Positions 13,201 through 15,445 of a stretch of DNA of 64,000 nucleotides are shown here, one piece after another; the first letter of the stretch is position 1, and every line of letters begins with the position of its first letter. Source of the stretch: Hemiscyllium ocellatum (taxonomy: Eukaryota); NCBI RefSeq assembly GCF_020745735.1, contig NC_083433.1:12783363-12847362 (forward strand), given 5' to 3'. Position numbers and translations under genes: made by a program. The notes beneath the pieces are model-generated. The model was not told where the DNA came from, made no database searches, and saw nothing but the letters and a program-made list of their open reading frames with translations.

Positions 13201-15165
13201 TCACCAGCTTAAAAATGTGACCTGAAAAGCACAATGCATGACTTAATCCAACAAGTTCAAACCGTTTAGATTTACACCAGATTTGACTCAAACATTTTAA
13301 TCATCATGTTCACAAGGGAATGGTATGACCATGCAATTCCTTTCAGCAGCTTTTCCTTTGATTCCTCTTGAGGGGTAAAAGGCAGATATGCCAGTATATC
13401 TGGAAATAGCTTCTTTAAACAATGGCAAGGGAAGGACCAGTTCAGTTATTTTCTGAGCTTGGATTGTTTTAGTTTCAGAGTAGCAGCTTCTCTGCTAGGT
13501 TCCATGCTTCAACAAAGTTTCTTACCCGAATGCTCTGTAAACACTGCTGCCTGCAAGAACCAGAATTTGAAATTACTATTTGCCAAGGTGTGTGTTTAAG
13601 ATTGTGGATATTGAAACAGTTCTTTGTGGTGATAGAGTCAGTTGGGTTCCCAAATAGTTGTCGTTTTAAATTCTGTTCTCTTTTGTAGGTGCTTGTACCA
13701 CAGTATGTAAATAAATTCTGTTTTATGAGGCAGAGTGGTATGTAGCATCACCACTGCACAATCCACCATACATCTGCCTCTAAATACAATTAGAGTCTGG
13801 GTGACCTTAAATTGTTTTCCCAGATCCAGCCTACTCCCTAACAGTAGGTTGAGGATTGTGAAGGGGCACAACTCAGGTCAGAGTGGAAGGGAGTGCTCCA
13901 TCTTTATTAAAACTGGTTCACTGAAAGCTGTTCCACCACCCTCAGGGTTAAAGGAATTAATTCTCATCCAAGATATATACACGTCTACCCATTGGAGGGA
14001 AATGGGCCAGGTGGGACTAGGTTGGGATATCTGATCAGCATGGACAGGTTGGACCAAAGGGCCTGTTTCCATGCTATATATTTCTATGACTGACTAGCCC
14101 AGAGTGATGAATATTCTCCCCATCTCTGGATGAGAACACCAAAACATTCATGCAGCAGACACCATCCAGGATGGAGCAGCCAACTCCATTGGTACTGCAT
14201 TCTCCACCTCCCTTCAGTGTCCATTATCTAGCAGGTATCCTGCAACACACAAACACCTTCCAAATAGGACATTCTAACATTCCAGCAGTGCATGGGCAAA
14301 CCACTACTTGGAAAAACTGGCCATTTTGTTTCCCATACCACCCTGATTTGAATGTCTCCATTTCTTCAGACATTGGGTCAAAGATCTCAGACTACACCAC
14401 CTACCTATGGGTGCACCAACACTTCAGCATATCAACTCTTCCTTCAGGTGAAGGGATGGACAACAAATGGATACCTGACCACTATCTACTCATGAATGGT
14501 GGATGCTAAAAGCCATAGGCCTCAACTGGGGCCTACTTAAGCAGATGCCAGTCACATCCTGACATTAAATACTTCTGCTCAGATTAGCCAAGCATTGATT
14601 AAATCTCCTTTGCAGTATCTAAACCAATATGCTTATTTAGGATCAACAGAAAATAGTTAAATATATCAGTACATCAAAACAGTAGAGAGGCAACTAGCCA
14701 GTGGATTCTTCCATTCCACCATATAGTTGACCCAAATGGTTTCAAAAATACCCAGTGAAACATCCAATTTTGACAGTCCTAGAGGGGGAATGACTGTCAC
14801 TGCCAGTGACAGTGATATCAGCAAGTCATACACTAACCAAGAACACTTCACTCTGCATACATCCCTGAAGACAAACTGGGACATTAGTTAGTGTACATCA
14901 GTATCATACCCCATTATTATGGTAACATCACATTTACCTTGAATTAATATTGAGGCAAGAGCTACAGAAGTCAAGCTACAGGAGTGTCAAGTTAATTAGA
15001 AACAGTGGAAAGATTACTTTACATAAGAGTTTTAACTTTAAGTCCCAAGGGGACAACACTCACCAAAGACTGATAGAGATAGGAGGCAGTGAGCTCCAGG
15101 TTAATCTGCTTGTTGACAGCAGCTTCACAATCCTGGTGATAGTTTTGACAAACCTGGGAAGCCAT
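10295..15165 (-). CDS. Ferritin subunit, 176 aa, L-like at the ferroxidase site (array copy 2)
   Basis: Exons 15064-15165, 11757-11903, 10913-11038 and 10295-10450 (102/147/126/156 bp, phase-0 GT-AG introns, the vertebrate ferritin exon layout). Translation [25 protein letters not shown]...YFDRDDVAL...QNQRGGR...[13 protein letters not shown]...[13 protein letters not shown]...[14 protein letters not shown]. Confidence 0.95.
11080..11370 (-). mobile_element. Decayed HE1-like SINE in ferritin intron 2 (present in all complete copies)
   Basis: Reverse complement of SINE motifs: CTGCATATCTTTGGACTGT, GGAGGAAACC, CATGCAAACT, GGAATTGAACTGGGG. Confidence 0.65.
12451..12480. repeat. (TGGA)n(TAGA)n compound microsatellite
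   Basis: tggatggatggatggatagatagatagata; much shorter at the paralogous site near 21178. Confidence 0.85.
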
Positions 15166-15259
15166 TTTATGAGGACTATTGGTCTCCACAAACCAATTCC
15201 CAGCCCAACTACAAATTTAACTCTAACACCAACTGTACCTAAACCATTACTGCCTTTGG

Positions 15260-15445
15260 ACTTTTATTTATACTCCTCATTTTATTCTGCACAAATGACA
15301 TCGTCAGTGATGGCCATTCACTCTTGTTAATCAATCAATCAGGTGCCATGTCCAATCAGCACATGATGGGAATTGAATCCAGAAGCCAATCAGAATTGAC
15401 AACTGGTCAATGATGGATTTGTTGATTGGCCTTTGACCTCCTGCA
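15260..15445 (-). promoter_or_regulatory. Proximal promoter of copy 2
   Basis: TATAAATAAAA on the minus strand about 100 bp upstream of ATG, inverted CCAAT boxes, DR1-like TGGCCTTTGACCT at 15427-15439. Confidence 0.65.

Follow-up and report, generated by a model that had tools for sequence, protein, structure and literature searches.

The stretch of DNA analysed here, 64,000 nucleotides (nt) of the epaulette shark (Hemiscyllium ocellatum) genome (contig NC_083433.1, positions 12,783,363 to 12,847,362; hereafter the window, whose own numbering is used throughout), contains seven ferritin genes on the minus strand and part of an eighth, found by comparing the window with itself and by tblastn with a related protein. 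Our subject is the 5' leaders of these genes and the iron-responsive element (IRE) that they lack. A preliminary description of the window had singled out positions 15165-15275, which comprise the ATG, leader and TATA box of copy 2. The ATGs of copies 1-7 lie at 6495, 15165, 24302, 34173, 41710, 50039 and 57575. Every gene of the array has four coding exons separated by GT/AG introns, with the ATG in exon 1, and the LCDF motif, which we take to mark the exon boundary of vertebrate H and L genes, stands at the start of the last exon.

Six of the seven genes are intact; these are copies 2-7, whose open reading frames (ORFs) and splice sites are undamaged and which encode proteins of 176 residues. 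The proteins begin MASQV... with no N-terminal extension. Those of copies 3 and 5 are identical to the H. ocellatum proteins XP_060705148.1 and XP_060705519.1, respectively, and in both the Pfam ferritin domain PF00210 extends over the whole subunit (119-120 bits against a cut-off of 24.5). Ratios of nonsynonymous to synonymous substitution (dN/dS) of 0.2-0.4, both among the copies and relative to the white shark, indicate at the sequence level that the genes are functional. Copy 1 is decayed (6388-6610 and 1747-3552): its TATA box has become TATGAATA, its leader contains an upstream ATG and its exon 3 is frameshifted, and on these grounds it looks like a pseudogene.

The ferroxidase residue Glu62 is replaced by lysine in all copies (motif QEK.EH), and the same is true of every member with a readable motif in the clade to which the window proteins belong. 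In a protein tree this K62 clade is confined to sharks (support 99/95), and it includes Heptranchias, Heterodontus, Scyliorhinus (catsharks), Mustelus, the Lamniformes (with Carcharodon) and the Orectolobiformes (carpet sharks). Carpet-shark members also have Glu in place of Gln141, and in copy 4 His65 has become Gln. A second array clade keeps the ferroxidase EE motif and includes a chimaera protein (98/94), and canonical ferritins fall into separate clades.

Promoters and leaders of the array

Each gene has a conserved promoter of its own, made up of CCAAT/Y-box motifs and TATAAATAAAAG, at 77, 107 or 115 nt before the ATG. From the first T of the TATA box to the ATG the distances in copies 1-7 are 115, 107, 107, 115, 77, 115 and 77 nt; the 65-105 nt given in the preliminary description was roughly right as an order of size and slightly short as a measurement. 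The TATA box reads TATAAATA, and in an alignment of the seven upstream regions the block that contains it, GTATAAATAAAAGTCC, is identical across copies 2-7. There are two to four CCAAT/ATTGG boxes per promoter, two of which in a given copy are accounted for by the Y-box core CTGATTGG, present in all six intact copies. A CRE-like site, TGATGTCA, is matched in five of the seven copies. No metal-, antioxidant- or hypoxia-response motif (MRE, ARE, HRE) is conserved within 600 nt upstream of the TATA box.

We assumed that transcription starts about 30 nt after the TATA box, and the predicted leader is accordingly defined as the interval from TATA+30 to the nucleotide before the ATG. So defined, the leaders are 47-85 nt long, the shortest being those of copies 5 and 7, which have a 38-nt deletion relative to the other copies. 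In copies 2-7 the leader is free of upstream ATGs, and the context of the initiating ATG is good in Kozak's sense, with A at -3 and G at +4. Cytosine makes up only 8-11% of the leaders, against 26% of the 5' untranslated region (UTR) of skate FTH1. Across three shark species, and despite sequence divergence, the leaders are cytosine-poor (6-11%) and rich in G and T (for example, at 15166-15242 in the window and in the white-shark and bamboo-shark leaders described below, L009 1-64 and L010 3914-4000), which may reflect selection for an unstructured leader.

The aligned upstream regions fall into three parts, namely a well-conserved promoter, the TATA block and a divergent leader. Compared pair by pair, copies 2-7 are on average 0.81 identical in the promoter and 0.89 in the TATA block, and their identity falls to 0.55 (range 0.31-0.99) for the leader, a value close to the 0.63 of the first 300 nt of intron 1. 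The corresponding figures are 0.97 for the coding part of exon 1 and 0.87 for the 3' UTR, and the earlier observation that the leaders diverge more than the exons or the 3' UTR therefore stands. To judge from these identities, the leader evolves like an intron and is under little constraint. A conserved regulatory hairpin would produce the opposite pattern. Nor do the leaders fold more stably than shuffled sequences (z from -1.5 to +0.4). Positions of the individual features are collected in Table 1.

Table 1. Positions of array features in the window, with predicted leaders running from TATA+30 to ATG-1
Feature	Position	Strand	Remarks
Copy 1 leader (decayed copy)	6496..6580	-	TATA changed to TATGAATA at 6603-6610; upstream ATG
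Copy 2, whole coding span	10295..15165	-	exons 15165-15064, 11903-11757, 11038-10913, 10450-10295; 176-amino-acid ferritin; all splice sites GT/AG
Copy 2, exon 1 coding part	15064..15165	-	34 codons, then GT donor
Copy 2, predicted leader	15166..15242	-	77 nt; 9% C; no upstream ATG; no CAG[A/U]G; fold z -1.5 against shuffles
Copy 2, TATA box TATAAATA	15265..15272	-	107 nt from ATG; within GTATAAATAAAAGTCC
Copy 2, proximal promoter	15273..15470	-	CCAAT/ATTGG boxes; Y-box core CTGATTGG; variant of CRE-like TGATGTCA
Copy 3, predicted leader	24303..24379	-	77 nt; TATA 24402-24409
Copy 4, predicted leader	34174..34258	-	85 nt; TATA 34281-34288; collinear with white-shark mRNA leader (z 5.8)
Copy 5, predicted leader	41711..41757	-	47 nt; 38-nt deletion; TATA 41780-41787
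Copy 6, predicted leader	50040..50124	-	85 nt; TATA 50147-50154
Copy 7, predicted leader	57576..57622	-	47 nt; TATA 57645-57652; gene intact
Partial copy 8, last exon	63492-63653		in-frame stop in exon 4

Between copy 7 and the partial copy 8, the spacer (57700-63400) exceeds the others in length by about 2 kb and includes a GC-rich stretch (GC 0.54 at 60001-62000); the extra length is probably an insertion.

Searches for an iron-responsive element

A ferritin-type IRE is recognised by an apical loop CAGUGN or CAGAGN in which C1 pairs with G5, and by a two-part stem with an unpaired C five base pairs 5' of that loop. The claim that no leader carries a CAGUGH loop in a C-bulged stem was borne out by every search we made. 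The pentamer CAG[AT]G occurs between TATA box and ATG in none of the seven copies. When both strands were scanned with a pattern like that of SIREs, the sense strand around the first exons yielded no CAGWGH hairpin with a C bulge and a 5-bp upper stem; sense-strand matches with such an upper stem were confined to coding exon 2 and have a U bulge. The Rfam models IRE_I and IRE_II gave no match in the 64 kb either at the gathering threshold (34 bits) or at E<=10, nor did a search of 15100-15700 with filters at their laxest give one at E<=10. We also built a custom covariance model from five cartilaginous-fish ferritin IREs and ran it with filters off over 1-16867 and 16906-64000, where its best score was 9.3 bits (E at least 1.2), with no match in any leader. 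The Rfam and SIREs-type scans proposed in the preliminary description have thus been run, and the case that it named as its own refutation, a spliced upstream exon bearing an IRE, found no counterpart, given that no IRE was detected anywhere in the 64 kb, every intergenic spacer included.

Several IRE-like structures were seen and set aside. A candidate at 15511 on the minus strand has a C bulge and a CAGUGA loop, and was rejected on the grounds that its upper stem has four pairs of which three are G-U wobbles, that it has no lower stem, that it is not conserved in the other copies and that it sits upstream of the TATA box. The exon 2 structure, GGAGG-CAGAGU-CCUCC with U in place of the C bulge (codons QRGGRVLLQ; 11765-11793, minus strand), recurs in copies 3-7 with loops at 20513, 29757, 39543, 47076 and 55391, and is present in a bamboo-shark retrocopy and absent from white-shark mRNA; it is probably a coincidence of the coding sequence. 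In exon 1 the antisense strand reads GGAGG-CAGUGA-GCUCC with an A bulge at the same place in every copy (15087, plus strand; codons LELTAS), which is the wrong strand for a ferritin mRNA.

Canonical ferritins of cartilaginous fish served as positive controls. The IRE of skate FTH1, in genomic loci and in Logan transcripts alike, scored 46.7 bits with Rfam IRE_I and is located in the exon of the ATG, some 100-135 nt upstream of it. Two further Logan transcripts for a 177-amino-acid FTH1-type protein (P0198), which stands beside skate FTH1 in the tree, also scored 46.7 bits, and three transcript-like contigs whose protein is identical to the 'ferritin heavy chain-like' protein of Chiloscyllium plagiosum scored 42-42.6 bits. 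With the custom model the controls reached 43-72 bits, these being the model's own training sequences. The general statement that canonical ferritin mRNAs carry a 5' IRE therefore holds for cartilaginous fish, at 42-47 bits with Rfam, and the contrast drawn with the array is a valid one. The array copies share with the canonical vertebrate H, M and L ferritins (Rfam RF00037, IRE_I) the fold and family PF00210, the four-exon structure and an ATG in exon 1. They differ in forming a shark-only clade apart from the IRE-bearing canonical ferritins, and in having predicted leaders that are short, C-poor and IRE-less, where the leaders of canonical cartilaginous-fish ferritin mRNAs measure about 120-200 nt and contain the IRE.

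Shark transcripts, retrocopies and relatives

Sequences derived from mRNA bear on the 5' end of the K62 genes. A 713-nt intronless contig in a Salmonella enterica assembly (JAPNGX010000175.1; L009) encodes a protein identical to XP_041033925.1 of the white shark, Carcharodon carcharias, whose genomic gene has introns and spans 2.56 kb, and L009 must therefore derive from shark mRNA. Its leader of 64 nt contains no IRE by Rfam or the custom model. It is collinear with the genomic leaders of copies 4 and 6 (z 5.8 against shuffles), aligns with that of copy 1 at z 3.9, and is not significantly aligned with that of copy 2 or 5. In a contig from another S. enterica assembly (JAGUME010000115.1; L008), the 30 nt or so next to the ATG are the same, but they are fused to GC-rich sequence that is unrelated. 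Both are spliced white-shark K62 cDNA annotated as Salmonella 'ferritin' in two bacterial assemblies; they are evidently the result of cross-sample contamination, and they imply that the transcript was very abundant in at least one library of shark RNA.

The bamboo shark Chiloscyllium punctatum has a processed K62 retrocopy (BEZZ01000042.1, 4001-4531; L010), with an intact, intronless ORF of 176 amino acids and, after it, an AATAAA signal and an A10 tail. In its leader it is similar to the white-shark mRNA (z 4.2); it has no TATA block, and no IRE was found in the whole 8.5-kb locus. The sequence speaks for a K62 mRNA that was expressed in the germline and whose leader, some 85 nt long, was without an IRE. 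The poly(A) remnant abuts a short interspersed element (SINE), the locus is annotated as a normal gene (GCC23888.1, XP_072405955.1), and its dN/dS is about 1 relative to copy 5 and about 0.3 relative to copy 6. An attempt to map the 5' end of the retrocopy onto the TATA box of the window was abandoned, as the only shared feature at the expected place is a AGTTGGTGTT block (a chance of about 0.1, by our own estimate), and we claim no precise start. Another C. punctatum locus (L001) was discarded, as it consists only of a decayed pseudo-exon 1 and many Ns.

The second array clade has the same kind of upstream region. H-like array genes of C. punctatum (BEZZ01001957.1; L007) have a homologous TATA block (GGAG.ATAAATA.AAG), ATTGG boxes and a short leader with no IRE, and differ from the K62 copies in keeping the ferroxidase EE motif and in forming a separate clade. 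Because these features are shared, the IRE-less type of promoter and leader may, from the sequences compared, predate the split of the two array clades. Both exon 1 copies at this locus (4300-4452 and 12174-12284) have an in-frame stop at codon 7 (CAG to TAG), and are either pseudogenes or errors of a draft assembly.

Ferritins without an IRE in their mRNAs are familiar elsewhere, and include vertebrate FTMT, the insect light-chain homologues and the plant ferritins, which are controlled mainly by transcription. The array genes resemble these in having no IRE. FTMT, however, is intronless and has a mitochondrial presequence, whereas the array genes have four exons, no N-terminal extension and many tandem copies. 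Our literature search on IRE-less ferritins returned mitochondrial ferritin and cases from insects and sponges, and the one on shark ferritin and the IRE returned nothing relevant.

A preprint on the Greenland shark genome reports 155 'FTL' and 179 'FTH1' copies, grouped in three clusters that the white shark also has, and an expression of the ferritin cluster that is specific to the ovary (10.1101/2024.09.09.611499). Its clusters resemble the array in being tandem full-length ferritin genes conserved across sharks, and the K62 copies of the window are most likely what it counts as FTL-like. The preprint is concerned with the number of copies, their synteny and their expression in the ovary; it uses neither the word 'iron' nor the word 'IRE', and it does not deal with the anatomy of leader and promoter or with loss of the IRE. 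The array is thus a case of IRE-less ferritin within a shark expansion that has already been reported.

Regulation of the array

We consider it highly likely that the array consists of shark-specific, tandem, cytosolic-type K62 ferritins that lost the 5' IRE long ago, are independent of IRPs (iron regulatory proteins) and have their output set through transcription and copy number. IRPs repress ferritin translation only through a cap-proximal IRE, and these mRNAs should therefore be translated regardless of IRP activity. We infer that they are IRP-independent, and, in agreement with what the preliminary description proposed, the array very probably escapes the iron-dependent translational brake, so far as leader sequences can tell. 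In the mechanism that we suggest, each gene would be transcribed from its own compact TATA and CCAAT/Y-box promoter, with the mRNA of this species predicted to start about 30 nt after the TATA box. The resulting leader of 47-85 nt, C-poor, weakly structured and lacking an upstream ATG, would lead into an ATG in good Kozak context. With no docking site near the cap, IRP1 and IRP2 could not block recruitment of the 43S complex; translation would then be constitutive, and output would be set by transcription and copy number. Expression may be sited in the ovary and oocyte or in the germline, a suggestion drawn by analogy from the preprint on another shark and from the germline retrocopy.

Some points weigh against this interpretation. 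The L010 leader shows no significant similarity to the window leaders (z -1.2 to 0.9), so that its 5' end cannot be placed precisely on the TATA box. The white-shark contig ends 64 nt before the ATG and so does not reach the opening stretch, some 20 nt, of the predicted leader. Among sequencing runs looked up for two leader types, those guessed to be RNA contain a fraction of 0.18-0.31 of the words sampled from leader and exon 1, no more than would be expected from the coding part by itself. Finally, non-canonical IRP ligands would be compatible with the evidence at the level of sequence.

If the TATA-proximal leader were not the real 5' end, the mRNA could start upstream or in a non-coding exon that carries an IRE. 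About 1.3 kb before each promoter is as conserved among the copies as are the exons (0.8-0.94), and splice-like motifs are found upstream, AAAAG|GTAGG at about 430 nt and an acceptor-like TTTTCAG at about 300 nt. However, the searches of both strands revealed no IRE-like hairpin over the whole window, spacers included; the TATA/CCAAT block is the best-conserved non-coding part; and several upstream ATGs would be included in any transcript that read across the promoter. The white-shark mRNA leader, moreover, is collinear with the genomic leader, and the retrocopy has neither TATA box nor IRE. A missed upstream exon is thus disfavoured because there is no IRE in the 64 kb, because each copy has its own promoter, and because of the collinear white-shark leader and the IRE-less retrocopy; we regard it as very improbable, and the absence of the IRE as no artefact of such an exon, as far as sequence can show. 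The conserved upstream block itself (15275-16550 in copy 2, with a matching block in every copy) contains no long ORF and may represent an enhancer, a tract of gene conversion or a transcript missing from the annotation.

We give equally little credence to the idea that iron control is kept by a non-canonical element, such as the exon 2 hairpin or an unrecognised leader motif. In copies 2-7, and also in the bamboo-shark retrocopy, that hairpin does combine a CAGAGU loop with a perfectly paired upper stem of 5 bp, but its bulge is U and not the C that IRPs need, it has no Rfam match at E<=10, and the white-shark mRNA is without it. It is also situated within the coding sequence, with some 250 nt or more between it and the cap, and an IRE in that situation does not block initiation. 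As for a motif in the leader, the leader is unconserved and without significant structure. Decay might explain the missing IRE differently, if the copies were mostly silent or degenerating duplicates whose loss of the IRE has no regulatory meaning. Copy 1 and the partial eighth copy are indeed broken, H-like array copies on one C. punctatum scaffold contain in-frame stops, and look-ups of sequencing runs for the two leader types found no RNA run that contains the leaders. Nonetheless, six of the seven copies are intact in ORFs and splice sites with the low dN/dS already given (0.2-0.4), and exons and promoter are conserved far above the level of the introns. A spliced K62-type transcript exists in the white shark, the retrocopy requires germline expression, and the homologous Greenland shark cluster is reported to be expressed specifically in the ovary (10.1101/2024.09.09.611499). 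General decay is therefore improbable too, if by a shade less so than the two previous explanations, and loss of the IRE from functional, IRP-independent genes is the reading that we prefer.

Beyond the array itself, we put forward more tentatively, and as a possibility slightly short of probable, a second, IRP-independent ferritin system in sharks. It would comprise hundreds of tandem genes, both H-like and independently evolved L-like K62 ones, that share one ancient compact TATA/Y-box promoter and an unstructured, C-poor leader, and whose expression in the germline and ovary would load eggs with iron, leaving the IRE-bearing canonical ferritins for cellular homeostasis. Few post-transcriptional switches in animals are as conserved as the ferritin IRE. 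That a large and old family of vertebrate ferritins, maintained by selection, does without it would mean that ferritin can be made in bulk uncoupled from the cell's sensing of iron. Taken together, loss of the IRE, a ferroxidase site blocked by lysine and the reported ovary expression point to a specialised iron-provisioning or antioxidant role in sharks, and the presence of IRE-bearing and IRE-less paralogues in one genome offers a natural contrast for probing the need for IRP control.

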